Of a stretch of 64,000 nucleotides of DNA, positions 243 to 62,532 are shown piece by piece. Both the position numbers and the translations under genes were made by a program. The notes under the pieces are model-generated. The model had not been told where the DNA came from. It ran no database searches and saw only the letters and a list, made by a program, of their open reading frames with translations. The stretch is from Octopus bimaculoides (taxonomy: Eukaryota). The stretch spans positions 22,267,120 through 22,331,119 of the forward strand of contig NC_068986.1 of assembly GCF_001194135.2 (NCBI RefSeq). Direction: 5' to 3'. Positions within the stretch are counted from its first letter, which is position 1; every line of letters starts with the position of its first letter.

Positions 243-1959
243 ATACATATGCTAGCATGGTACACAGACATTAAATGATGATGGTGATGATGATGATATA
301 TATCACCAGAGATTGTAGGGATTCTGACTTTGACTGCTAAATGTAGAGGGGCTGTGGGGGTGATGCTGCTATTTTTTTTTTTTTTGTTATATTTGTAGTG
401 AAAGGATCTTGGTGCAAAAGAGGACTATTTTGCATTATTTTTCAAAGTGATAAGGTCTTGGTGCAAGATAGAATGATTTAGTTTGATATGTATAGTAATA
501 GGGCCTCAGTGTTAGTCTATTTTACATGATGTGTACAGTGATAAGGTTTTGATGTAAGATTGTTGTGTTAAAGTCTTGGTACAAGACTGTTTAGTGATGG
601 TACCTTACCATAAGACTAGTTTGTGTGATATGTACGAAGAGTAGATCTTGGTGTAAGATTGTTTTTTGCGATGTGTACAATGAAAAGGCCTGTTTTGTGT
701 GATGTATGTACTGATAGGGACTTGGCAAAGTTGGTGGAAATCAAGTTGTCATATCCACATTGAAGGATGTTTGTCAGATTTCAATCTCTGGAAGTAGGGG
801 CATGTTTGGCAGGGGATATTTTGACAGTCTATGGATGAGAACCACATTTGTAAACTTGAAGGTGATATTTTCTATGTAGGAGTATACAGTCAGTAGTAAA
901 AACAAGTAGGTGTGTCTATATATATATATATATATATATGCATGTGTGAGTGTATTTGTGTATGTGCAAGCATATATGCAACATTTATAGATTACAATTA
1001 ACAAATGACATTTAAGAATCCTCATTCCTTTCAGTAATTGGTACTAAGCAAATTAGGTCCCCGCTCATAATTAGAATATGATATTGTCAAAATAGCTCTT
1101 GTTTATTCATTTATTTAATCTCATGGAATACTGAATTCATATCCAAACAATAAACTCATTTGTTATATTGGAAGTTAGATATACACACAAGATTACTACT
1201 ATTTGTTGGTTGGTTGTTATTTGTAATGTACTTCTAACTTTTTTTGTTTTCATCTGCTTTCTGTCTGTTCCATATTATTTAAGATTACACAAGTCATTTT
1301 GAGGAAATCTCTGATATCTAAATGAGTCATTAGTGTATCTAGTGTGAAGGCTCAGTAGTTCCCAATTAAGGATCTCTTAGCTATGGGTCTATGTGTGAAA
1401 AACAATGTGTGCATGCAAGATATTCAGGATGAAATCAAAATTTTTTAATTGGAGATACCTAGGTGTGGTTTGTTTAGTTATGTAGTTCACTTTACAACTA
1501 TATAGTTTTGGGGTTCAATCCCACTGCATAGTACCTTGGGCAAGTGTTTTCTATTATAACTCAAAGCCAACCAAAGACTTGTAAGTGAATTTGGTAGACA
1601 GAAAGTGTGGAATCCCATTGTATGTATCATCATTATCATTATTATTATCATTATGGTGAAGAGGTGATAGAAAGCAAGTAGGGGCCATACATCTAAGTTA
1701 AAGGGTGGTATATTTAGTGAAGTAAAGTGGGGATTGGAGAGGGTGGGTAGGTGGGGGACTTCACAAGATTTTGAAAGGAGAGTGGGAGCTAGAGGTGGGG
1801 GAATGGAAGGGGTTTGATAGGGGTATATTGTGTGCAGGTAGGTAGGTAGGTGAGCACATGAAGGAGAATGGAGGGGAGTAAGAGGAAACAGCAGTGGAGA
1901 GCACAGGTTGGTTGTGGGAGGAGGAAGGGATCATAGATATGGATTTTTCTTTGCTGGGC

Positions 1960-2210
1960 AGGTCGTCTCAAGCACAGCATATTGCCAGTTGTCTTGATCG
2001 TTTGTTATCTCCTCCCTGAGGCTCAACATCTGAACGTTGTTTCTGATCACTTCCTCCCAAATCATCCTGGGTCTTCCTCTTCCACAGTTTCCCTCTGCAA
2101 TTAGAGATCAACATTTCTTTATGCAACTGTTCTCATCCATACACATCACATGACTATACAAGCACAGTCTTCTCTCTTACACATTACAACTAATGCCTCT
2201 TATACTCAAT
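1960..2210 (-). mobile_element. RTE-clade LINE 3' fragment
   Basis: Minus strand reads ...AEGNCGRGRPRMIWEEVIRNNVQMLSL...DQDNWQYAV, the typical RTE C-terminal GRPR..W motif, with stops. Confidence 0.7.
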
Positions 2211-2364
2211 TTCTCTGTCAATGCATTTACACATTATTGTACATGCACATACAGTGGAGCATGCTGGCTTCATTTCTTTCAAGCCTTTGCATGTCACAGC
2301 TTATGTTTTGCTGACATGTTTCTGTCCATACACAGGTATCATACAGTGTACAATACAAATAAGT

Positions 2365-2738
2365 TGTTGGCACTCCATCGCTTACGACGTCGAGGGTTCC
2401 AGTTGATCTGATCAACGGAACAGCCTGCTCGTGAAATTAATGTGCAAGTGGCTGAGTACTCCACAGACACGTGTACCCTTAACGTAATTCTCGGGGATAT
2501 TCAGCGTGACACAGTGTGACAAGGCTGTCCCTTTGAATTACAGGCACAACAGAAACAGGAAGTAAGAGAAAGTTGTGGTGAAAGAGTACAGCAGGGTTCG
2601 CCACCATCCCCTGCCGGAGTCTCGTGGAGCTTTAGGTGTTTTTGCTCAATAAACACCCTCAACGCCCGGTCTGGGAAATGAAACCGCGATCCTAAGACCG
2701 CGAGTCTGCTGCCCTAACCACTGGGCCATTGCGCCTCC
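2365..2738 (-). mobile_element. Full-length tRNA-derived SINE (OK-like) with 15-bp TSD
   Basis: tRNA-like head GGAGGCGCAATGGCCCAGTGGTTAGGGCAGC on the minus strand; identical flanks ACAATACAAATAAGT at 2350-2364 and 2739-2753. Confidence 0.9.
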
Positions 2739-3099
2739 ACAATACAAATAAGTAACCTGCTGGATTTAGTAAATGTGAATATTATAGTATCTATAATACA
2801 CACACAGTTTATTCACACCATGGTCTTCACACAGAAAGAAGTTTATCACCCAAATTCATGAATGGATGTACCTTCATTTAAAATACTATTGGTATATAAG
2901 TGTTGGACTGTGAATAGTTTGCTTGCACCATTTAAAGAACAATGTCTTGAAACACAGGTTTAGAAATTGTGGTAAGAATATATTATCCAAAAGACCCTCA
3001 CCATTCGTCCTCTGCATGTTATCATCTGATATAATGTAGTTGCCTGTGATATGGAGTCAGATGATTAACCATCTGATACAAGGATGCGGTGTCTGTATC

Positions 3100-3400
3100 T
3101 TGTTGCCTATAGCCATTCATTCATTTTAAACCTACATTGGAATACCCCTTACATATATGAACTGGTTTGTCTGCTACACTACATAAAAAGAAATGTTAAA
3201 AGCAGTACTTTTATGACCAGTGCACAACAACTATTTCACAGAGGTGCAGTTTCCTCTCTGTGTTTCTTCTATCATTACTACAATGGCTTCTATCTATTTG
3301 AACTAGTTGTTTGATTCCTCCTTTATCTATTTCTCCTTCTTGAGTCACTATTTCTTTGTTTCACCTCCTAGGGAACACACAAAATATTCACTATTATTTT
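3100..3400 (+). mobile_element. Degraded CR1/L2-group LINE 3' fragment
   Basis: Translates LFHRGAVSSLCFFYHYYNG, matching the LSHRRAVSSLCLFYRYYNG-type C-terminal motif. Confidence 0.6.
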
Positions 3401-5475
3401 ATCTTACCTCAAAGGCAGCACTCAAAATGTGTTTTCACAATCCTTCTCCCCACAATTGTAACTCTCAAAAATTCCTGATTTTCCTGCAATCATCAATCTA
3501 TAATTTAAATTGAACATCAACTTCATCAGTCTTCTCAGTCTAGGACAGCCTGTTATGATCATAGGTGTTGCCCCTTCAGTCTTAAATTTAAAATCAAAAT
3601 TGATGTGACAAAACACTTGCATCGTCAGGTTGTCAATAGGGACCATAAACAAGCTCACAGCTTTATGTACTGTATCATATTCTTAATTGTTTCTATAGAG
3701 TTAGCGACAAAAAAAAAAAAACCCTCTCCTTAAGATATCTTTTAAATAGCTGTATGATTGATTGAAGTTCCCGGTTACCCCTTTTAATGACTGGGGTTGC
3801 TGAGAAGAAAATAGCTATTTTACAGTTACATTTTAAAGTTTTCTTTTACAGTAACAGAGTGGAAAACATTAATTTGTTGTAACATTTTGGTCAGAATTTA
3901 CATGGTGCTAATTGAAAACTAATCCTTAATTATTTGTGCGGGAAAATAAATAATATTATTTAAAGGAAACACCAAATTTCCTGACACCATGGAAATATTT
4001 TCAGATGTTTTTGGAGGTGAGGGTAAGAATATGTTGCACTTGTGTGTTTACAGTTTGCACTTGTGTAAGGGAAGTGAAGAGAAATAATATACTAAACCAA
4101 GATTTTTTCTCGAAATATTACCAACTTCAAGTTATTTATTGAGTAAAAAGATGTAAAAGGAAATATTACGTTCTCTATTATGTCTATGAACTCGACAAAC
4201 ATTTTCACTTTTAATTTAATCTTCGAGACTTATCGATTTAGTGTTTCATTCTAGATTTTTAAAAATAGATTATCAACATTATTTTCTGGTTAAGGATTTT
4301 TCGAGTACAAATCTTACTGATAAATAACTATTTTGGTATTATAAGGCGCTATTTAAAGTTTCATGGTATTTGTTGATACAGAATTGATATTGTCATTCGC
4401 ACATTGGGTATTACACTGACCCAAAGAATCAAGAACTATTTTCTGCCAGGTGACAGATGCTGCGACTTGCTTTTGCATAGTTTCGATGACGATGCCATCC
4501 ATATTCGTTAGAAAGTTGCTCACTGACGCCTTGTCCCAATAACCCCATACAAGTGGCAACAACAATAAACATTATATACATCCCATGTGATTGATAACTC
4601 TGGAATGCGTTGCAATCCTAAAATGGTTCCATCGTAGGGCGGTTATACAAAAATATAATGAAAGTATATGTTGTGTTCTCATTAGCACGCCGGTTTTTAG
4701 CTTCATACCCCTATTTTTTCTTTATATTTCTCTGAACGGAATTTAGTTGACCGTTAGTTTATGTTTATCCTCTCTATTCCAAATGTGACCGCTTCTCAGT
4801 AGACAATGGCGACTTATATTGCAAAGCAACATGTGTTGTTTGTCTAAACATGCAAACTACTGCAAAGTACAATGAATACAATTAACAATACAAGCAACTT
4901 CCATCAAGAAACTACTTATATAATTATGAAAGTTTTCGTTAATTAGTTTTGTTTATTATTAACATCACCAAGAGCATTAAGAAGTCTCACTCGAGATGGA
5001 ACCGGCATAATATATATAAACATAAACAGCTGCCACCGGTATACATTATTACAGATTATTAAACCGATTGTTTTGAAACTGCAATAAATCACTATATGAG
5101 TACAAAAATGTTTATTTGTTTGCAAAACAACAATAAAACACTATCGAAATATAATAACCCGCTTTAGGGAAGGGGGTTATTAAATATGATATTACTGTTT
5201 ACTGAATAAACTAGCTAATATATTACGCCATTGCTGAGGCTTTGTTTACAAAATAAAAATTATTTATTACAAAATGAATATTAATAAAGTGTGAAGATAA
5301 TGTTTACTAAGAATGTTTCAGTTAATATTAATATGAAAGTAAAACGAAAAATTTCGAATAACATGAAAGTTATTTGAAAAAAACATTGGCTTTATTTCCT
5401 GACGCGTAGTAACATGTCTATGTCAACAGACAAACTACAATGCCATTCAAAAGTGAAGCGTTCAAATTTTTAGCC

Positions 5476-5640
5476 AGTTCAAAGGGAAGTAAGTAACGAG
5501 GATTTTTAATTGGCCTATACGTGACGTTATTGGTCGTGGTTAATTGTAGCTGGTCGTGTATTGGCTGTTCGCTTGAACAAGAACTTTTATCAATGTGAAA
5601 TATAAATATACACAGAAATAGGCCACTACTCCTTAGTTAC
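5476..5640 (+). promoter_or_regulatory. Core promoter of the FRAT-like gene
   Basis: AGTTCAAAGGG (5476-5486, TCF/LEF consensus); ATTGG at 5509, 5529 and 5560; TGACGT at 5522; TATAAATA at 5601; Inr-like TTAGTT at 5633-5638; ATG at 5668. Locally CpG-rich, non-repetitive. Confidence 0.6.
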
Positions 5641-5667
5641 GCTGTCGGAGACTACATCGTAGCAAAT

Positions 5668-6510
5668 ATGCCGATCAGGTTAGAAAGCATGGGAGCTGTT
5701 AATGTAAGCCCTTCGAATCAAACGGATTTAAAAGATATCGAATGGTTAACTCGTGGCATCGAGGAAACATTACAGTTACAACAACATCAACATAACCATT
5801 GCGAAACCGGTCACCATTTGAAGTCGGTTTCTCCTTCAGCAAGCAGCATGCCGAGTCGCCATCCTACTTTTAGTGGCGGTAATCAGGCACATGTGCCCAT
5901 CGACCACGACAACATGGTAATACCAACTAAACCTTGCAAAGCTGCCACAGCCGGCACCTGGTTGCCTTACGTTTTACCGTCCGTTCGAGACAGACATCTA
6001 AACCGAGTGAAAAGTAATTGGCGGCACGGCAACTTCAATAATAATGACAACAATAACAAATGGGTTGTGAAGCGGCTGAACCACAGGAACGTGGTCAGCA
6101 AGAGGAGGAAAAATTATGTGTATATCGAAGATGTCCGGACTAGAAACGGTTGTAATACAGACTACAGGCATCACCAAAAATTGCTTTCTACACAGACTTT
6201 AATTCAGGAAGCTGTGCGTCGACTGTATGGATTACATAGAAGCACTGGTTCTACAACCATTAATAATGATACAAACAATAACAACAATCCTAACAGTAGC
6301 ACCATAATGACTACTACTACTAATAGTAGTAACAACAACAATAATAATAATAATAATGGTACTACTGTAGGACACAATGGCATGGTCTCTGTCGGGACCG
6401 GCAGCTGCTGTACATTTCAGCAAGAACGTCAACAACAACAACAACTATTACTATTTCAGCAAAACAGTTTTAGGGACAAATGTGAATTATTTTGTGATGT
6501 AACTGTATGA
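5668..6510 (+). CDS. FRAT: Intronless FRAT/GBP-like GSK3-binding protein, 280 aa
   Basis: aa169-186 HQKLLSTQTLIQEAVRRL aligns with the vertebrate FRAT GSK3-binding helix LQQLVLSGNLIKEAVRRL. aa23-37 DIEWLTRGIEETLQL aligns with FRAT N-terminal EVDRLVAQIGETLQL. The start MPIRLE resembles MPCRRE. Single exon, as in vertebrate FRAT1/2. Alignments are from memory, not a database search. Confidence 0.85.
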   Translation: MPIRLESMGAVNVSPSNQTDLKDIEWLTRGIEETLQLQQHQHNHCETGHHLKSVSPSASSMPSRHPTFSGGNQAHVPIDHDNMVIPTKPCKAATAGTWLPYVLPSVRDRHLNRVKSNWRHGNFNNNDNNNKWVVKRLNHRNVVSKRRKNYVYIEDVRTRNGCNTDYRHHQKLLSTQTLIQEAVRRLYGLHRSTGSTTINNDTNNNNNPNSSTIMTTTTNSSNNNNNNNNNGTTVGHNGMVSVGTGSCCTFQQERQQQQQLLLFQQNSFRDKCELFCDVTV

Positions 6511-17853: not shown

Positions 17854-18181
17854 TCAGTGGTTAGGGCAGTGGGCTCACGGTCATAGGATCACAGTTTTGA
17901 TTCCCAGATCAGGCATTGTGAGTGTTTATTGAGTGAAAACACCTAAAGCTCCACGAGGCTCTGGCAGGGGGAGGTGGTGAACCCTGCTGTATTCTTTCAC
18001 AACAACTTTCTCTCACTCTTCCTGTTTCTGTTGTGCCTGTATTTCAAAGGGCTAGCCTTGTCACACTGTGTCACACTGAATATTCCCGAGAACTACGTTA
18101 AGGGTACACATGTCTGTAAAGTGCTCAGCCACTTGCATGTTAATTTCATGAGCAGGCTGTTGTCGTAACTGATGGAGTGCC
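17854..18181 (+). mobile_element. OK-like tRNA SINE, older copy
   Basis: Colinear with the reverse complement of 2365-2738. Confidence 0.8.
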
Positions 18182-18946: not shown

Positions 18947-20035
18947 CAAGGGGTGTTCATTAAAGATTTCACCTGACCCACTTCTCAAGGACTGGGATAA
19001 ACAAAACTTGGCATAATTATTAGTCCTCTACATAGCCACCACCAATGATGACACACTTCTCCGATGAGCTGTAAAGACCTCATCTGTAGAAGTCGGTAGG
19101 TTGTGTCTAGAGCCACTACTTTACCTCAGAAATAGGTCCATCATCTGAAAAGTGCTTCCCCTTCAAAAAAGACTTCATGGTTGGAAAGAGGAGGAAGTCA
19201 GATGGTGCAAGGTTGGGTGAGTAAAGATTTCATAGCCGCAGGAGTGTGCTTTCATCTGGGCAACATGCACATTGTGAACTTCAGTGTTGACTTGGAGGAG
19301 GCAGACTCCTTTAGTCAGCATGCCACACCTCTCTGCTTTGATGGCGTCCTGTAATTTCCTCAGCAGAGAAGCATAATATGCCCCTTTAATTGTGGTGCCC
19401 TTTACCAGAAAATCCATTATCACTACTCCGCTCTGTTCTCAAAAGACTGAGCATCACCTTGTCTGCTGAGGGTTGGGAGCAATTGACTCATTCCTTCTTC
19501 TGAAAATGTGCAAGCATTCAGGGTATCCATCGTGTAGACAACGTCTGCATGTGCAAATGGTCATGAATGGGTTTTTTTCCCGGTGCCTACATTTATCTTC
19601 ACTTTTGGGCTAGTTGCCAAATAATTATGCAGCAATCCTTGAAAATAGCAGCTTCCCATTTATGGATGGTGTCGTCATCAATGGCAGAATCTGGGCATCC
19701 AAGAATAGGAGCAATTTCCATTGATGTCCGACCACATTTGAACTGGCTATGCCAGTGCTTGACTACATTGTCACTGTAAACTTCTTTTATCTCATCAAAA
19801 GTCTCTTCTGGTGTATGATCTTTCAAGTATAAGAACCTGATCACTGATCTGCAGTCAACTGCCTCCATTATAACACCTTAGTCTACTTTAGCAGCTGTAA
19901 AAGACAAACGAATACTAGTGGAAAGCTACAATTTACAATGTGACATGTAGAGACATGTATGATTATACCTGTACAAGTTCTATTTCCTGCAATAACTGGA
20001 AGTGAGTCAGGGGAAACTTTAATGAATACCCCTTG
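18947..20035 (-). mobile_element. Degenerate mariner transposon with TIRs
   Basis: TIR CAAGGGGTGTTCATTAAAGATTTC after TA at 18945; reverse-complement match GAAACTTTAATGAATACCCCTTG ending at 20035. Transposase remnants MEAVDCRSVIRFLYLK... (19599-19868) and TIKGAYYASLLRKLQDAIK...GVCLLQVN (19175-19423), with frameshifts. Confidence 0.85.
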
Positions 20036-21974: not shown

Positions 21975-22292
21975 GAAGGTGTATGACTTAGTGGCTTGGG
22001 CTTTTGGTTCACAATCATAAGGTTGTGAGTTTGATTCCTGGGAGTGTTTTGTGTCCTTGAGCAAGACACTTTATTTCAAATTGCTCCAGTTCACTCACCT
22101 GGAAAAATTGAGTTGTACTTGTAATTGAAAAGGCCAGCTTTGTCATGCTCCATACATAATCTCCTCAAGAAATACATTAAGGATACGTGTGCTTATGGAT
22201 ACTCAGCTACTTGCACATTAATTTCATGAATAGGTTGTTCCATTGATCAAATCAACTGGAACACTTGTTGCATGTAACCAGTGGAGTGCCAG
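21975..22292 (+). mobile_element. Degraded OK-like SINE
   Basis: tRNA-like head and 3' GATCAACTGGAAC...GGAGTGCCA similar to 2365-2738. Confidence 0.65.
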
Positions 22293-30828: not shown

Positions 30829-31443
30829 NNNNNNNNNNNNNNNNNNNNNNNNNNNNNNNNNNNNNNNNNNNNNNNNNNNNNNNNNNNNNNNNNNNNNNNN
30901 NNNNNNNNNNNNNNNNNNNNNNNNNNNNNNNNNNNNNNNNNNNNNNNNNNNNNNNNNNNNNNNNNNNNNNNNNNNNNNNNNNNNNNNNNNNNNNNNNNNN
31001 NNNNNNNNNNNNNNNNNNNNNNNNNNNNNNNNNNNNNNNNNNNNNNNNNNNNNNNNNNNNNNNNNNNNNNNNNNNNNNNNNNNNNNNNNNNNNNNNNNNN
31101 NNNNNNNNNNNNNNNNNNNNNNNNNNNNNNNNNNNNNNNNNNNNNNNNNNNNNNNNNNNNNNNNNNNNNNNNNNNNNNNNNNNNNNNNNNNNNNNNNNNN
31201 NNNNNNNNNNNNNNNNNNNNNNNNNNNNNNNNNNNNNNNNNNNNNNNNNNNNNNNNNNNNNNNNNNNNNNNNNNNNNNNNNNNNNNNNNNNNNNNNNNNN
31301 NNNNNNNNNNNNNNNNNNNNNNNNNNNNNNNNNNNNNNNNNNNNNNNNNNNNNNNNNNNNNNNNNNNNNNNNNNNNNNNNNNNNNNNNNNNNNNNNNNNN
31401 NNNNNNNNNNNNNNNNNNNNNNNNNNNNNNNNNNNNNNNNNNN
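30829..31443. other. Assembly gap (N)
   Basis: N run. Other gaps: 34533-34542, 41688-42179, 44143-44897, 51334-51838; most abut microsatellites. Confidence 1.
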
Positions 31444-31589
31444 NGAGGAGGAGGAGAGGAGGGAATGAGGAGGAGGAGGAGGAGGAGGGGAGGGGAGGAG
31501 GAGGAAGGATCACAAAGTATTCTAAAAATTGATATAAGGGCTGCATATAATACAACCTAACAACAACAACAACAAGCTAACAATAAATC

Positions 31590-34370: not shown

Positions 34371-34601
34371 GTTTTGAATTTTGTGCGTGTGTGTGTGTGT
34401 GTGCGTGCATGTGTGTGTGTGCGTGCATGTGTGTGTGCACATGCAATTGTCCTCCTAGCAATGCTTGGCAACTGATGATGGTTTTCTTATGTCCCTGTAA
34501 ATTTTCAGTTCAGCAAAAGAGATCGATTGAATNNNNNNNNNNTTGTGGCAGCACCCCAGCATGGCCACAGTTCAATAATTGAAACAAGCAAAAGATGAGA
34601 C

Positions 34602-41687: not shown

Positions 41688-43729
41688 NNNNNNNNNNNNN
41701 NNNNNNNNNNNNNNNNNNNNNNNNNNNNNNNNNNNNNNNNNNNNNNNNNNNNNNNNNNNNNNNNNNNNNNNNNNNNNNNNNNNNNNNNNNNNNNNNNNNN
41801 NNNNNNNNNNNNNNNNNNNNNNNNNNNNNNNNNNNNNNNNNNNNNNNNNNNNNNNNNNNNNNNNNNNNNNNNNNNNNNNNNNNNNNNNNNNNNNNNNNNN
41901 NNNNNNNNNNNNNNNNNNNNNNNNNNNNNNNNNNNNNNNNNNNNNNNNNNNNNNNNNNNNNNNNNNNNNNNNNNNNNNNNNNNNNNNNNNNNNNNNNNNN
42001 NNNNNNNNNNNNNNNNNNNNNNNNNNNNNNNNNNNNNNNNNNNNNNNNNNNNNNNNNNNNNNNNNNNNNNNNNNNNNNNNNNNNNNNNNNNNNNNNNNNN
42101 NNNNNNNNNNNNNNNNNNNNNNNNNNNNNNNNNNNNNNNNNNNNNNNNNNNNNNNNNNNNNNNNNNNNNNNNNNNNNNNATATATAAGTACTGAATTGTG
42201 AATTTCAGTAAGGGTCATTAGTAATACACACACAATGGGCTCCTGGGTAATTTCCATTTTTGAAATTCAACTCAACTAACAATGTATTAGTCAACATGGT
42301 GTTATAGCAGAAGATACTTGCTCAAGGAAATGCGCTGTGAGAACAAAACCCACAATCCATGAATATGGCTGTAAAGCAACTTCTCAACCATACAGCCATA
42401 TATGGCTCTTTCTGTGTTGTGGCTTGTTTGTTGAGAAGCTTAGGGTTTGGTTTATGTGACGCCCGTGGTTTATGTAGTGAAACTTGGCATTTCAGACAAA
42501 AACTAGGCAACGGAAAAAAAACCAAAAAAAAAACAGAATGAGAATGAAATAAGTCTAAATTCTGTAAATATTAACATCATCACTATCATTATCATTTTAA
42601 TGTCTACTTTTCCATGTTTGCATGGATTAGATCTTAGATTAGATGAAAGTACACTGGGATTGAGTTTTCTATGGTCAGATGCACTTCTTAATTAATCCCA
42701 AACCACATTGGTTTCCAAGGGAGATAATAATCTCCCAGTCTCATGAAAAACAAACAATCCAGACATAGTTATGCAGAGAATTTAAAACAAATGACACAAT
42801 ATGTATGAGCCTTTGTATTTATAAAGATCATATGTCATGTCAAAACATGCTGAGAAACCTAAACATGCTTTTGCAGTGGACTGCAAGTAAATGGCACTGT
42901 TTGCATAGACAGTGATACCATTGTTAACAACCAGAAAATAAATGTGATGACAAGGGGAAATATGAACTCACACAAACACACATACAGTTACACACACATG
43001 CACACACATGGATGTATACACACAAGAATACACATGCACACACACACACACACATGCACATACATGCACACATATGCACACACACACACATAATTGGGAT
43101 TTCTTATGTTTTTCTCTACCAAATCCACTCACAAAGCGTTGGTTGGTCCAGGACGATAGTAGAAGACACTTTCCCAAGGTACCATTCAGTGGGACTGAAC
43201 ATGAATCTACCTGGCCAAGAAGCAAACATTTTAACCATACAGCCATGCCGGCATAGTTATTTATCTGCACTGCAACAGCATTCACCTTCCATGATTAGCT
43301 TATTAACTCAGAATTCTTCTATTGCAGACAAATTGAATATTACATATTCAAATATTACATATTCACTTTAGAACTGTTCTATGATATAATGAAGGAGACA
43401 TATTTTCAGCTGACCTGAAGGTGAAATTGCTTTGATGACCTGTAGCCATGTCCTCAGTTGATTATGACAACAGTAATGCAAAACCAAACATGGAGTTGAA
43501 TTGACATTGTCAGAGATTTAATGCTTCTCAGATATCTTCTTCCCATTCAAGACTGAACATGCAAAGACAGAGAATTGTTAGCATAATCGGCAGTGACTAA
43601 ATATCATAACATTCCCAGAGATTGTACAGTTGCATTTTGTGGTTGAGTAAAAAAATATCCAAACACCAGATATTTGTAGTTTTTCCTTGCTGAGTTTGGA
43701 GGCTGGGGCAAAGCCTGGGCTCTTTGCAG

Positions 43730-44142: not shown

Positions 44143-44896
44143 NNNNNNNNNNNNNNNNNNNNNNNNNNNNNNNNNNNNNNNNNNNNNNNNNNNNNNNNNN
44201 NNNNNNNNNNNNNNNNNNNNNNNNNNNNNNNNNNNNNNNNNNNNNNNNNNNNNNNNNNNNNNNNNNNNNNNNNNNNNNNNNNNNNNNNNNNNNNNNNNNN
44301 NNNNNNNNNNNNNNNNNNNNNNNNNNNNNNNNNNNNNNNNNNNNNNNNNNNNNNNNNNNNNNNNNNNNNNNNNNNNNNNNNNNNNNNNNNNNNNNNNNNN
44401 NNNNNNNNNNNNNNNNNNNNNNNNNNNNNNNNNNNNNNNNNNNNNNNNNNNNNNNNNNNNNNNNNNNNNNNNNNNNNNNNNNNNNNNNNNNNNNNNNNNN
44501 NNNNNNNNNNNNNNNNNNNNNNNNNNNNNNNNNNNNNNNNNNNNNNNNNNNNNNNNNNNNNNNNNNNNNNNNNNNNNNNNNNNNNNNNNNNNNNNNNNNN
44601 NNNNNNNNNNNNNNNNNNNNNNNNNNNNNNNNNNNNNNNNNNNNNNNNNNNNNNNNNNNNNNNNNNNNNNNNNNNNNNNNNNNNNNNNNNNNNNNNNNNN
44701 NNNNNNNNNNNNNNNNNNNNNNNNNNNNNNNNNNNNNNNNNNNNNNNNNNNNNNNNNNNNNNNNNNNNNNNNNNNNNNNNNNNNNNNNNNNNNNNNNNNN
44801 NNNNNNNNNNNNNNNNNNNNNNNNNNNNNNNNNNNNNNNNNNNNNNNNNNNNNNNNNNNNNNNNNNNNNNNNNNNNNNNNNNNNNNNNNNNNNNNN

Positions 44897-51333: not shown

Positions 51334-51838
51334 NNNNNNNNNNNNNNNNNNNNNNNNNNNNNNNNNNNNNNNNNNNNNNNNNNNNNNNNNNNNNNNNNNN
51401 NNNNNNNNNNNNNNNNNNNNNNNNNNNNNNNNNNNNNNNNNNNNNNNNNNNNNNNNNNNNNNNNNNNNNNNNNNNNNNNNNNNNNNNNNNNNNNNNNNNN
51501 NNNNNNNNNNNNNNNNNNNNNNNNNNNNNNNNNNNNNNNNNNNNNNNNNNNNNNNNNNNNNNNNNNNNNNNNNNNNNNNNNNNNNNNNNNNNNNNNNNNN
51601 NNNNNNNNNNNNNNNNNNNNNNNNNNNNNNNNNNNNNNNNNNNNNNNNNNNNNNNNNNNNNNNNNNNNNNNNNNNNNNNNNNNNNNNNNNNNNNNNNNNN
51701 NNNNNNNNNNNNNNNNNNNNNNNNNNNNNNNNNNNNNNNNNNNNNNNNNNNNNNNNNNNNNNNNNNNNNNNNNNNNNNNNNNNNNNNNNNNNNNNNNNNN
51801 NNNNNNNNNNNNNNNNNNNNNNNNNNNNNNNNNNNNNN

Positions 51839-51937: not shown

Positions 51938-52700
51938 CTGGAGGTGAATGGTTTCACATATAGGTTCGTGTTTACTGATAAAACTGCATTTCACCAAAGT
52001 GGCAAAATGAACAGGCATAATTTGAGATTTTGGGACATGGCAAATCTGCATTTTGTACTGGATCATGAACATAATTCTCTAAAGGTAACTGTTTTCGTTG
52101 CCATAACAAATTGAAGAGCATCTGGGCCTTTCTTCTTCATGGAGTCCTCTGTTATAGGGTGCACCTACCTTGACATGTTGTTTATTTGGTTGTTGCCCCA
52201 GGTGCAAGAAGAGGTATTTGACATCATTATGCAGCATGATGGGGCTCCACCACATTGGCATAGACACGTATGCGATTACCTCAACAAGCATCTTCCAAAA
52301 TGCTGGATTGGATGTGCTAGAGTGAATGGTTTGCCATTTATGGTCTGCACCCCAGCCCAGGTCCTCCAACCTATTGCTTTGCAACTTTTTCCTTTGGAGT
52401 TATCTAGAAGACAACATGTCCATACCCCTACTTCTACAGCACTTACAGAAGTTAAAGCAATCGATAGGTGATGCAATTGGTTCAATTGATCAAGCTATGC
52501 TGGCACAGGTGTGGCAAGAACTAAACTATCATGTAGACATCTGCCATGTGGCAAAAGTCACCCACATTGAACATCTGTGACTGTCCGTAGAAACTTAAAG
52601 AGTTAACCTTTCATGTAATATACATATTTTTGCAATATATTCATTACAATTCTCACATGTATATTCTCCTTTTGTACCATTTATTTTGAATTACCCTGTG
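51938..52700 (+). mobile_element. Tc1/mariner-superfamily transposase fragment (long DD spacing, DD41D/DD37D-like)
   Basis: FTDKTAFHQSGKMNRHNLRFW, QHDGAPPH, PRSSNLLLCNFFLWSYL and C-terminal HIEHL*; right end ...GAATTACCCTG; frameshifts and a stop. Confidence 0.85.
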
Positions 52701-57116: not shown

Positions 57117-59246
57117 TATATACATACATATATACACACATGAATGTTGAATTGTGTTGAACAAAAGAGAGAGGTGTCCTCAATACATGTAGAGAATATG
57201 GTTTCTGGAATTTGGATTTTTATCATGCAACTCGTGTATCACATGACTGTAATTTTCAGGCAGGAACTATTACAACTCAGTCACTGCAGTTTATCATGGA
57301 GAAAAAATACTCACTTAAGATAAAATGGTGTTGAAAACTTTTGGATAAAGGAAGCTTTGCTTTGTAGACAGTCCGGAATTGCATTTCATGGTATCTGGTG
57401 CTGAAGAGAACTAAAGAGATCAGAATGCATCCTTTAGTTTTGTAAAGAGTGCTCTGAACTGACAATGGTATTTTCACACCTCCTTTTCTTAAGCATGATA
57501 TTTTTCTCTTTAATAAACTGCAATGAAAAGCCTTTACAGGTTCAAATATCTCACAAGCATATTTATACTGGTCTTAAGTTTATATATATATGTGTGTGTG
57601 TGTATGAATGTGTGTGTGTATGTATGAGTGTGTGTATGAATGTGTGTGTGTGTGTGTGTAAAGAATTATGTATAATTCATTATGGAACATGTATTGTTGG
57701 AATTGTTGGTTTTCAGGTGTGTGTATGTGTGTTTGCTGTGTGTTTCTGTCTTGGAAAGTTCCTCCGGCAGGAGTTATAGTGTTTTTCAGCTTGTCTCACT
57801 TGTTATCCTCTTGCCTTATAGATTATTCTTGTTTGTAAACAGTCTCCGCATAATGGCTATGTCCTTGTTCTGGTAATGTTGTGTGAGTATGCAAGTGTGC
57901 ATTGTGTTTTATGGATTTATTTGTTTTTTGTTGTTTTTTTTTTTTGAGCTATTGAAACTAACACTAAATTTGCTGCAGGTGCACAAAAGACATAATATTA
58001 CTAAACAACAACATACCGAAAGAACATGCAACATGTGCCTGGAAACTCATGTAGCTACACAAGATGAAGGTCACTGCGGCATAAACCTGAAGATCAAAAA
58101 CAACAATTCAATTTCATTAAGCTATGTCGTCATCATCATTGTCATTGTTGTCATCGTCACCACCACCACCACTACCAACATCATCATCATCATCATCATC
58201 ATCATCGCCACCACTCGCCCTCCCCCCATCATCATCATTTAACATCCACTTTTCAATGCTTGCATGAATCAGATGGAATTTGTCGAGGCAGATTGATATT
58301 CAATGGTCAGATGCCTTTCTTGTAACTAACTTTCACCAGTTTCCCAGCGAGATGATATTTTCCCCTGGACAGACACGGTTTCCATGGAGAACTGGAAATG
58401 ACCACCTTTGCTTGTATGATAATGACACTCCTTAACAACTATCACTCGATGATGTCTAGACAACGGTATACACACACACACACACACAATGATAGACTTC
58501 TTTCAGATCCCTTCTACCAAATCCACTCACAAGGCTTCGCTTGCCTTGGGTTATTGTCGAAGATACTTGCCCAAGGATCCACATGGTGGGTCTGAACTGC
58601 TCCCGACTAGTACCTTGTGGCCATAATGTCCCAGGTACAATCCCTAACTGTGACATCTTGTGCAAATGTCATTTTCTATAGCCACAGGCTAATCCTCACA
58701 CCCTGAGAGTGCAATTGGGGAGACGAAAACTATGTTGAAGCTCATTGGTTTCTATAAGCATTGAAAGTGGCCTTGAAATGATGATGGTATGTATATGAAT
58801 ATGTATTTATAAGTATATAGGGTATGTACATCAATACAGCCAAGAAGTGCAAAACAGTACTGAATGTCAAGGAGCAAGAGTTAATTATAGTTTGTAACAG
58901 ATGACACATCGCTTCCTATTTCACATCTCTGATCATCAGACTGAAGTGTGTGTATGTGTGTGTGTGTGTGCATGTGTATATATTCTGTTCTTTTATTCGT
59001 TTGCTTGTTTCAGTCATTTGACTGAGGCCATACTGGAGGACCACTTTAAAGGGTTTTTTTAGTTGAAAGAAATCAAATCCCAGGAGTTATTCTTTGTAAG
59101 CCTAGAACTTATTCTATCAGTCTCTTTTGCTGAACCACTAAGTTGCAAGGACACAAATACACCAACATTGGTCGTGAAGAGATGGTGTGGGGATAAACAT
59201 AGACACACACATAAATATACACTTATTTATATGATGATGACACACT

Positions 59247-60270
59247 GGCCATTTGCTAGATAGGCTCAGAAAGGACCTCACCATGAACTCCCTTGGACTG
59301 AAGGTCATGATAGAAACCAACCTGAAAACAGTAGATATCCTTGATGTGACTCTAGACCTGGAATCTCACACTTATAGGCCCTTTAGGGAGCCAAATGTGA
59401 AGCTGTCTTACATTAACACAGGTTCCTGCCATCCAGCCATAGTGTTCAGGAACCTGGTTAAGGGCGTCAGCAGGAGAATCTCCAGTTTATCTTCAAGCAA
59501 AGAGATCATTGATGCTGCTGCCTTGTACTACAACCAGGCTCTGGCTGTCAGTGGTTTCAAGGATAGTATTGGTCACATGCCAGACCCTAGCCACAACAAG
59601 AGAATGCACCACGGGAAAGTGCTGTGGTTCATACCACCCTTCTCTTTAAACATTAAGACCAGAGTAGGTAAGATCTTCCTTAGTTTAGTTGATAGGCACT
59701 TCCCCCATACTAATAGATACAATAAAATATATAGTAGACATACCCCGAGACTATCCTTTAGCTGTGCACTTCGTGTAAAAAAGATTTTAGCAGGTAGGCT
59801 CACACCTGAGGCAGAGGCAGGATGCTCATGCAGAGGTAACATGACTTGTCCACTGAATGGCTACTGCAACATGGAGACAGTAGTATACGAGGCAGAAGTA
59901 ACAGCCGCTGGACCAAATGGACAACCGAGCATATGGAAGTATGTGAGGGACAATGGAAGGCCTTTTCAGAACCCACTTTAATAACGACAAGTCCTCATTC
60001 AACATCCCAGAGGGATGTAAAGCAACAGCCAAACACATTTGGTCTTTGAAAGAAAGCACCACGGAGTACAGCATAAAGTGGAAGATCCTGGAAAAATGCA
60101 TGCCATACTTCAATAGCAGCAGGAAGTGCAAGCTATGCTGGCTGAGAAGTGAGCCATTTTAAAGGGTACTCAACACTCGGATGTTTACTTGAATAGCAAG
60201 AGTGAGGTGTTTGATCCCTGCCCACATGGAAGCAAATACATTCTATCATACCTGCACACCCCAACATGAT
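59247..60270 (+). mobile_element. 5'-truncated Penelope-like retroelement (RT thumb + CxCx5Cx5C linker + GIY-YIG endonuclease), probably Naiad-type
   Basis: TVDILDVTLDL, YINTGSCHP and WFIPPFS motifs; CSCRGNMTCPLNGYC; VVYEA...KYV; after a frameshift HIWSLKE...WKILEKC...CKLC and LNSKSEVFDPCPHGSKYIL. Confidence 0.85.
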
Positions 60271-61789: not shown

Positions 61790-62532
61790 TTGGGTCATCC
61801 CATAAATAATGTGGTTATTTTATACTTCTATTATTTTTCAAAACAAGGAAAGTTGAGCAGAGAATCTGCATCAAATTTTGTCAAAAGCTTGGCGATACCT
61901 GCTCAGAGACCTATGCAAAGTTTTCAAAAACTTTTCATTGTTCTTGCCACAATCAAGGAGATCTTGTGCAACTGAAGCCCAAGTGCCTTTTTGCTTAGCT
62001 GAAAGCAGTTTTGGTAGAAACTTGGCAGACATGTGTCTCATACCCAAATCTTCAGTGATAATGGACTGAGCTGAAACATAACTGGTCTGCACATCCTCTG
62101 ATAACTCATGGATAGTGATTTGAGAATTTTCCCTCACAGCTACATGCACATCTGTGATATTTTTCGCAGTTCTGCTAGTTGCAGGTCTCCCAGTATGTTC
62201 ATCAATATCAACATTTTTCCAGCCATCTTGGAAACATCTGAATCACTCATACACTTGTGTGCAGCTCATACACTCCTCTCCATACACTTTGCTCAGGCCT
62301 CTGAGCAGGTATCACCATGTCAAATTTCACTGTGATGGTCAATGCAACAATCACACACTACACACCTTCCTTCCAAGCACTGCTGTAAACAGCAGAAGTG
62401 AGCTAGAATGTTAAAACTTAGTGTGCATGCACAGCTGAGTTGAAGGTCAATCTTTGTTAAGTGGCTTCACACTGCATGCTTTAGCTATGTTACAATGACA
62501 ACAGTCCGGATACTTATCGACCAGACCTCTCG
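61790..62532 (-). mobile_element. Composite of mariner fragments
   Basis: TIR-like TTGGGTCATCCCATAAATAATG at 61790; plus-strand EQRICIKFCQKLGDTCSETY at 61848-61930; minus-strand transposase N-terminus (SAKFLPKLL) from 62340 to 61926; TIR-like CGAGAGGTCTGGTCGATAAGTATCCGG at 62506-62532. Confidence 0.75.

Follow-up and report, generated by a model that had tools for sequence, protein, structure and literature searches.

An intronless cephalopod gene that probably encodes a divergent GSK3-binding protein of the FRAT/GBP family

GSK-3 is bound either by FRAT/GBP proteins or by Axin, but not by both at once, and GBP leaves its catalysis on peptide substrates uninhibited (PMC2169372). Because it excludes Axin without inhibiting peptide catalysis, GBP protects Axin-dependent substrates such as beta-catenin (PMC2169372), and FRAT1 and FRAT2 favour the nuclear exclusion of GSK3 (PMC9122323). 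Xenopus requires the family to form its dorsal axis, mice can dispense with it, and according to a 2020 paper it is not present in invertebrates (PMC6974163). This supposed absence underlies the view of FRAT as a late vertebrate addition to Wnt signalling. We investigated a stretch of 64,000 nucleotides (nt) of Octopus bimaculoides DNA (contig NC_068986.1; the whole stretch is called the window, and positions are given in its coordinates), in which a FRAT/GBP homologue had been predicted from the sequence alone (the original prediction). The reading that we favour, with a probability of roughly 0.7, is that positions 5668-6510 hold a functional, expressed, single-exon cephalopod gene for a divergent FRAT/GBP-family GSK3-binding protein, disordered save for short helix-forming motifs.

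In the list of open reading frames (ORFs) of the window, an ATG opens an uninterrupted forward-strand ORF of 280 amino acids (aa) exactly where it had been predicted, and this is the sole long ORF of the 64-kb window that is neither repetitive nor low-complexity. The two motifs predicted at nt 5734-5778 and nt 6172-6225 are both present at these positions, as aa 23-37 and aa 169-186 of the protein. The first is a leucine-rich box near the N-terminus, here termed box A (DIEWLTRGIEETLQL), and the second (HQKLLSTQTLIQEAVRRL) lies within a longer FRATtide-like segment, here termed box B (TRNGCNTDYRHHQKLLSTQTLIQEAVRRLYG), which is presumed to be the GSK3-docking motif.

The octopus protein, whose nearest known counterparts are vertebrate FRAT1, FRAT2 and FRAT3 and Xenopus GBP, resembles human FRAT1 in size (280 and 279 aa, both largely disordered) and in the order of its elements. 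Both proteins have an N-terminal leucine-rich box, octopus box A matching FRAT1 residues 39-53 (EVDRLVAQIGETLQL) in targeted comparisons. In both, a FRATtide-like box (TRNGCNTDYRHHQKLLSTQTLIQEAVRRL in octopus, TRTGDDDPHRLLQQLVLSGNLIKEAVRRL in FRAT1) comes after a basic stretch, and 14 of 31 residues are identical between box B and FRAT1 192-222. The octopus protein and FRAT/GBP also have in common an N-terminal MPx[RK]xE, the octopus MPIRLE resembling the MPCRRE start of FRAT1 and the MPGKQE start of a bridging sequence described below (L029), a likeness judged by eye and without statistics. The coding sequence (CDS) is uninterrupted in the octopus gene, as it is in human FRAT2, a gene that appears in a listing of intronless genes.

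We also noted differences between the octopus and vertebrate proteins. Helix 1 of box B reads His-His-Gln-Lys in octopus and Leu-Leu-Gln-Gln in vertebrate FRAT, and the LI[K/Q]EAVRRL motif carries Gln in octopus and Lys in vertebrates. The octopus protein contains neither the acidic N-terminal tract nor the Pro/Ala-rich linker of FRAT, and adds a KWV..IEDVR block and an Asn-rich tail. The KWV..IEDVR block is cephalopod-specific, without a counterpart in the bridging proteins P0006, L007 and L029, and BLASTP sets it against the basic stretch RRGWLRG..RRLQQRR of FRAT1.

The searches proposed with the original prediction gave a significant pairwise match and a weaker profile match. BLASTP against human FRAT1 (in a sequence identical to PDB chain 5oy4_X) returned E=2e-7, in one collinear alignment that runs through both boxes. 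In Pfam, GSK-3_bind (PF05350) was the sole match, with aa 140-188 placed correctly on profile positions 173-221, at a score (E=0.073, 12.9 bits) below the gathering threshold of 25 bits. The Smith-Waterman score against FRAT1 was 61, which was equalled by none of 3000 global and none of 3000 windowed shuffles (Gumbel P of 3e-5 to 2e-4), and separate hhalign runs gave P=0.003 for box A and P=0.001 for box B. In a phmmer search of PDB sequences, FRATtide was listed at E=0.75. Box B is statistically solid, and box A was seen only in targeted comparisons. The 9-mer LIQEAVRRL itself recurs in unrelated bacterial proteins, for example in ABC transporters after the Walker B/D-loop region, its occurrences including contigs L034, L044, L063, L071 and L094; because of this chance recurrence, the 9-mer alone is not evidence of kinship with FRAT.

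These results bear on the possibility that a real cephalopod gene unrelated to GSK3, for example one for a nuclear or transcription-associated low-complexity protein in line with the RefSeq name 'transcription factor mef2A-like', carries short helices that resemble those of FRAT by chance. The recurrence of LIQEAVRRL elsewhere is in keeping with such an origin, as are the sub-threshold Pfam match, the lack of a significant match of cephalopod-only profiles to FRAT1, and the basic stretches resembling nuclear localisation signals and the poly-N/Q tracts of the octopus protein, which are typical of nuclear proteins. We nevertheless consider a chance likeness quite unlikely, given pairwise and shuffle statistics against FRAT1 of about 1e-4 to 1e-7, the independent placement of box A and of box B on the correct FRAT1 positions, and bridging sequences that reach Pfam GSK-3_bind at E=1.4e-4. 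Furthermore, no MADS, MEF2 or other domain was found, and the 'mef2A-like' name given to the orthologue belongs to a mis-spliced model laid over an intact ORF.

We identified bridging ORFs through profile searches and through a scan of metagenomes for LIQEAVRRL. These lie on low-GC, non-cephalopod eukaryotic contigs from metagenome and Sequence Read Archive assemblies. The ORF of contig L029 (382 aa, on a contig of 35% GC) begins with MPGKQETE and carries an acidic tract; its box A reads DMDSLVLNIRDKLRM and its box B reads DAYELLQELIHSGTLIQEAVRRL. It matched Pfam GSK-3_bind at E=1.4e-4 and 21.8 bits, a score that is also below the 25-bit cutoff, and its residues are identical to FRATtide at 15 of 23 positions (E=5e-7) and to octopus at 13 of 21 (E=2e-4). 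In sequence, the L029 box B stands between those of molluscs and vertebrates. The ORFs of P0006 and L007, of about 145 aa each, contain both boxes in order (box A, ELDCIANTITEKLTF and EMDSLSNKISEKLTL; box B, LERLLSEQTLIQEAVRRL and LRKLLREQTLIQEAVRRL, respectively). We additionally observed a Cys-rich middle (KC.KCFSRNC.C) and an acidic C-terminus (SHYTSYDS.SD) in these two proteins, and a similar tail (SYLDEESSD) in L029.

L029, P0006 and L007 are all single ORFs and share with octopus the box A pattern [DE]-Phi-[DE]-x-[LI]-x3-[IL]-x-[ED]-[TK]-L-x-Phi (Phi being a hydrophobic residue), and the TLIQEAVRRL core of box B is identical in all four. In helix 1 of box B (L..LL or LLQEL), the bridging proteins come nearer to vertebrate FRAT than the cephalopods do. 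The acidic tract of L029 is a feature of FRAT1 too. For the truncated ORF of contig L014, GSK-3_bind was the top Pfam match (E=0.034). Word-indexed profile searches added only P0006 (E=1.2) and short fragments. Two further candidates were rejected as relatives: P0026 is a bacterial false positive, and L013/P0025 matched BCL7_N (E=3e-4) and contains no box A.

We constructed profiles of each box without any vertebrate sequence (invertebrate-only profiles), and compared them to a PDB set of 177,635 sequences. The box B profile recovered FRATtide at 2.6e-5, two FRAT1 peptides at 2e-4 and full-length FRAT1 at 2.7e-3; these constructs were the top four of the 177,635 sequences, and the next match had E=0.53. 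FRATtide was likewise recovered when the doubtful L013 was removed, which improved its E-value to 5e-6, when only two-box proteins were used (1.3e-5) and with non-cephalopods alone (1.5e-5). For the box A profile, the best match within FRAT1 fell exactly on residues 39-57, and none of 5000 composition-matched shuffles equalled its score. Sequence comparison points to a two-box architecture that is common to octopus, FRAT1 and other non-vertebrate proteins.

A number of results weigh against a FRAT/GBP affiliation of the octopus protein. Its Pfam score is sub-threshold, as stated above, and GSK-3_bind was matched by only two of the six members of our cephalopod alignment (A1; six members from five species, two of them Octopus) and was not found in two of three further cephalopod proteins. 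A full-length cephalopod-only profile built from A1 gave no FRAT match among the PDB sequences, and the cephalopod-only box B profile reached FRATtide at a non-significant E=0.19. FRAT1 was not recovered from the PDB sequences with the box A profile, and N-terminal fragments gave no Pfam match, though a control with FRAT1 1-70 gave 4.6e-38. When 1.84 billion representatives were searched exhaustively with HMMER and a trimmed cephalopod profile, nothing but two clusters, both of cephalopods, came up at E<=1e-3. Cephalopods also diverge in helix 1 of box B, which reads HHQKLL in them and LLQQLV in FRAT1. An AlphaFold2 model, described below, is of very low confidence (pLDDT 34) and does not discriminate between the hypotheses. 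All of the statistical support, moreover, comes from roughly 45 residues in two short motifs, and these could in principle have arisen by convergence.

Under convergence, a lineage-specific disordered cephalopod or lophotrochozoan protein would have evolved a FRATtide-like amphipathic helix and an upstream leucine-rich helix, and would act in the manner of FRAT without being its orthologue. The likeness is limited to the two short motifs, with the rest unalignable to FRAT1, and the HMMER search shows no continuous family past cephalopods. Axin, GSKIP and FRAT bind through unrelated helices to the same groove on the GSK3 C-lobe (references in PMC8775565), which indicates that short docking helices can evolve repeatedly. 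A single helix could plausibly arise in this way, but the same order of two distinct boxes is much less likely to do so, in particular with the same residue identities (E-T-L-Q-L and L-I-x-E-A-V-R-R-L), and along with the MPx[RK]xE start, the basic patch upstream of box B and the intronless CDS. These features recur in at least three non-vertebrate groups and in vertebrates, and the intermediate character of the L029 box B is as predicted by divergence. We accordingly regard convergence as unlikely, and retain the reading of the octopus protein as a divergent FRAT/GBP-family member. The homology and the order of the boxes that were originally predicted are supported by a chain of evidence, and not by one decisive match, with box A as the weak part.

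We investigated the distribution of orthologues in other cephalopods. A homology search identified five relatives: a cluster sharing 91% of residues, an Argonauta hians protein sharing 67%, and three others sharing 37-39%. Orthologues were found in O. sinensis, O. vulgaris, Argonauta, Sepia esculenta and another decapodiform, that is, in at least five cephalopod lineages in which the boxes are invariant, so that an orthologous ORF keeping both motifs, which had been named beforehand as a test of the prediction, exists from Octopus to Sepia. In a cluster look-up, the window protein falls together with O. vulgaris CAI9724285.1 ("hypothetical", 130 aa) and O. sinensis XP_036359875.1 ("transcription factor mef2A-like", 243 aa, a spliced model). 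Both models cut short an ORF that the O. sinensis genome carries whole and unbroken (L098, 10001-11550), and these public models of the orthologue (P0008 and P0009) look to be prediction artefacts. Membership of the MEF2/MADS group was rejected, as no MADS (SRF-TF) or MEF2 domain was found at E<=10 in any cephalopod member; the spurious 'mef2A-like' name likely originates from the Asn/Thr/Gln-rich tail.

Synteny between the window and O. sinensis chromosome CM016864.1 extends over approximately 17 kb, with an identity of roughly 90%, indicating that the window comes from an Octopus species other than O. sinensis. Together with the clustering of the protein with those of O. vulgaris and O. sinensis, this synteny confirms the predicted cephalopod origin of the DNA. 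The ORF is without interruption in four genomes (the window, O. sinensis, Argonauta hians and the decapodiform genomic contig L006), and the S. esculenta RNA contigs L003 and L004 are colinear with L006 and contain no intron, bearing out the single-exon structure as far as the CDS is concerned.

The CDS is 95.4% identical to that of a related Octopus contig (L001), compared with 87.7% and 88.8% in the flanks, with every indel in frame and a ratio of nonsynonymous to synonymous substitution rates (dN/dS) of 0.19. Relative to syntenic O. sinensis DNA, bins of the CDS are 98.5-99.5% identical and form the conservation peak of the locus, and dN/dS is 0.22 for the whole CDS, with 0.10 in aa 1-192 and a relaxed 0.40 in the Asn-rich tail. 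Conservation across cephalopods (A1) is concentrated in MPIRLE, box A, the KWV..R.N..IEDVR block and box B. Box B is invariant in all cephalopods except for R184K, and the invariant columns of the basic block are K131, W132, V133, R136, N138, N141, R146, I153, E154, D155 and R157.

The cuttlefish orthologue is transcribed. Contig L003, which encodes the cuttlefish protein (P0005), comes from SRR25097169, a whole-hatchling RNA-seq library of S. esculenta; both L003 and L004 end in an A-run, and L004 begins with an adapter remnant. We additionally observed that the Octopus contigs L001 (SRR11869394) and L002 (SRR11869385) are near-identical contigs of 3.03 kb, with the same ends in two independent runs. 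Before the CDS they are colinear with the window for 1.7 kb, and then for another 0.4 kb beyond a 2-kb indel that they skip; they could represent either genomic DNA or a transcript with a long 5' extension.

One might suspect a pseudogene, or an ORF arisen by chance in AT-rich and repeat-rich octopus DNA, since repeats, transposon remnants and spurious low-complexity ORFs abound in the window and automated annotations disagree on the gene model. This is extremely improbable for an ORF that is kept from Octopus to Sepia with invariant motif blocks, evolves at a dN/dS of 0.1-0.2 with in-frame indels, forms the conservation peak of its locus, and has a cuttlefish orthologue assembled from RNA-seq. 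It is a genuine gene, under constraint and conserved across the cephalopods.

The AlphaFold2 model of the octopus protein, built with the cephalopod alignment, has a mean predicted local distance difference test score (pLDDT) of 34 and nowhere reaches 50; its only helices are at residues 21-42, in box A, and 175-191, in box B. Predicted disorder with helices at the boxes is as expected of a FRAT-like protein with fold-on-binding motifs. We infer GSK3 binding, competition with Axin and an export function for the octopus protein by analogy with FRAT. Box B (aa 158-188, ...LL....LIQEAVRRL) would adopt a helix-turn-helix fold as it docks on the C-lobe groove of GSK3, where it would compete with the GSK3-interaction domain (GID) of Axin. 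Such competition would shield beta-catenin and other Axin-dependent substrates from phosphorylation, while the catalytic site of GSK3 would be left unblocked. Box A may be the counterpart of the N-terminal box of FRAT, plausibly a CRM1-type export signal and/or a site for a Dvl partner, and the octopus protein could also carry GSK3 out of the nucleus. On inspection of the sequences, box A fits the export-signal pattern Phi-x3-Phi-x3-Phi-x-Phi in all groups, and the export signal of FRAT has reportedly been placed on this box by Franca-Koh et al. in 2002.

The Axin GID and GSKIP are both short helices that occupy the same C-lobe groove of GSK3 in competition with FRAT (PMC2169372; references in PMC8775565), and are functional analogues of the role proposed for box B. 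The Axin GID has no sequence relation to box B and scores at about 1 bit against the box B profiles, and no Axin chains were found among the PDB matches of the box B profile. The RGS and DIX domains of the large Axin scaffold were both missing from the Pfam matches of the octopus protein. Membership of an Axin-GID type was rejected on these grounds.

The features of the locus, and of FRAT-like ORFs from other contigs, are collected in Table 1.

Table 1. Coordinates of features at the octopus locus (window positions) and of FRAT-like ORFs on other contigs (positions in the contig named).
Feature	Position	Strand	Basis or remark
Single-exon CDS, FRAT/GBP-like protein (280 aa + stop)	5668..6510	+	ORF, dN/dS, orthologues
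N-terminal MPIRLE	5668..5685	+	M1-E6 invariant in cephalopods (A1)
Box A DIEWLTRGIEETLQL, aa 23-37	5734..5778	+	pattern Phi-x3-Phi-x3-Phi-x-Phi, predicted helix
Basic block KWV..R.N..RRK..IEDVR, aa 131-157	6058..6138	+	directly precedes box B
Box B TRNGCNTDYRHHQKLLSTQTLIQEAVRRLYG, aa 158-188	6139..6231	+	FRATtide-like, presumed GSK3-docking motif
Low-complexity Asn/Thr/Gln-rich C-terminal tail, its end being the octopod-conserved FRDKCELFCDVTV	6244..6507	+	alignment, relaxed dN/dS
TATA-like element TATAAATA at 5601-5608, then CTCC.TAGT.ACGC	5600..5650	+	alignment of four sequences
Gap-free conserved non-coding block	4400..5400	.	comparison with O. sinensis
FRAT-like ORF of L029	561..1709	-	both boxes
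FRAT-like ORF of L005	329..844		both boxes
FRAT-like ORF of L007	about 1060..1502		both boxes
FRAT-like ORF of L014	3..215		5'-truncated

Upstream of the gene, the TATA-like element and the sequence that follows it lie 20-67 nt before the ATG, and align among the Octopus window, Octopus L001, decapodiform L006 and Sepia RNA L003. This is a putative core promoter or 5' untranslated region (5'UTR); the Sepia contig L003 extends upstream of the TATA-like element. Further upstream, the block at 4400-5400 is 95-98.5% identical to O. sinensis without gaps, compared with 84-92% and many gaps in neighbouring DNA. The upstream region is also partly alignable to Argonauta (4733-4858 and 5189-5667, at 74-79%), and the block is a candidate enhancer, promoter or long 5'UTR. 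The 2 kb at 1890-3925 are present in the window and missing from L001, and hold a dispersed repeat of about 300 bp, copies of which lie at 2419-2723, 17855-18161 and 22112-22291, the copy at 17.9 kb being inverted and 87% identical. A 5'UTR intron at 1890-3925 was ruled out by the lack of GT..AG, by flanks that align past the break and by the dispersed repeat; the segment is probably an indel between species, involving an element of the SINE (short interspersed element) or MITE (miniature inverted-repeat transposable element) type.

The window is a draft assembly with five N gaps, many microsatellites and transposon remnants. The N runs lie at 30829-31444, 34533-34542, 41688-42179, 44143-44896 and 51334-51838, with microsatellites on their flanks, and are the source of long spurious 'X' ORFs in the ORF list. 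We also identified a remnant of a Mos1/mariner-type transposase on the reverse strand at 19178-19877, in two ORF fragments (Pfam HTH_48, 2e-6; Transposase_1, 1e-6), and transposase- or reverse transcriptase-like ORF fragments at 52115-52468, 59241-59978 and 61874-62242, for which there was no Pfam match. No host gene that would allow synteny with the neighbours of vertebrate FRAT to be compared was found in the window, nor within 10 kb on either side in Argonauta or O. sinensis.

The novelty of an invertebrate FRAT, which the original prediction had left to be checked, is mostly favoured by what we found. A literature search identified no report of an invertebrate FRAT/GBP, though unreported earlier matches may exist in Pfam or InterPro, and the absence of FRAT from invertebrates is stated in print (PMC6974163). 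No precomputed PF05350 annotation is attached to any of the cephalopod proteins studied here, and in databases the octopus orthologues are labelled only "hypothetical" or "mef2A-like". The prediction had also held that FRAT was retained in molluscs and predates the protostome-deuterostome split; among molluscs, the support for retention is from cephalopods, and common ancestry before that split is what we infer. On a broader view, which we hold with somewhat less assurance than the identity of the octopus gene itself, FRAT/GBP would be an ancient bilaterian GSK3 regulator and no vertebrate innovation. It would survive in cephalopods and several further non-vertebrate lineages as a disordered protein with two motifs, encoded by an intronless gene that evolves fast, and gene predictors and Pfam thresholds would systematically have missed it. 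Competition between FRAT and Axin and/or the nuclear export of GSK3 would then belong to the ancestral Wnt/GSK3 toolkit, and would have been lost in Drosophila and C. elegans.

If this is correct, a protostome homologue would move the origin of FRAT back to at least the bilaterian ancestor, and would reveal GSK3-docking residues kept since that ancestor (L-I-x-E-A-V-R-R-L). The gene would be a case of short-motif disordered regulators escaping profile-based annotation. Asymmetry in beta-catenin drives early cell-fate decisions in spiralian embryos, and the ancestral role of FRAT, whether in competition with Axin or in the nuclear export of GSK3, would become testable in these embryos.

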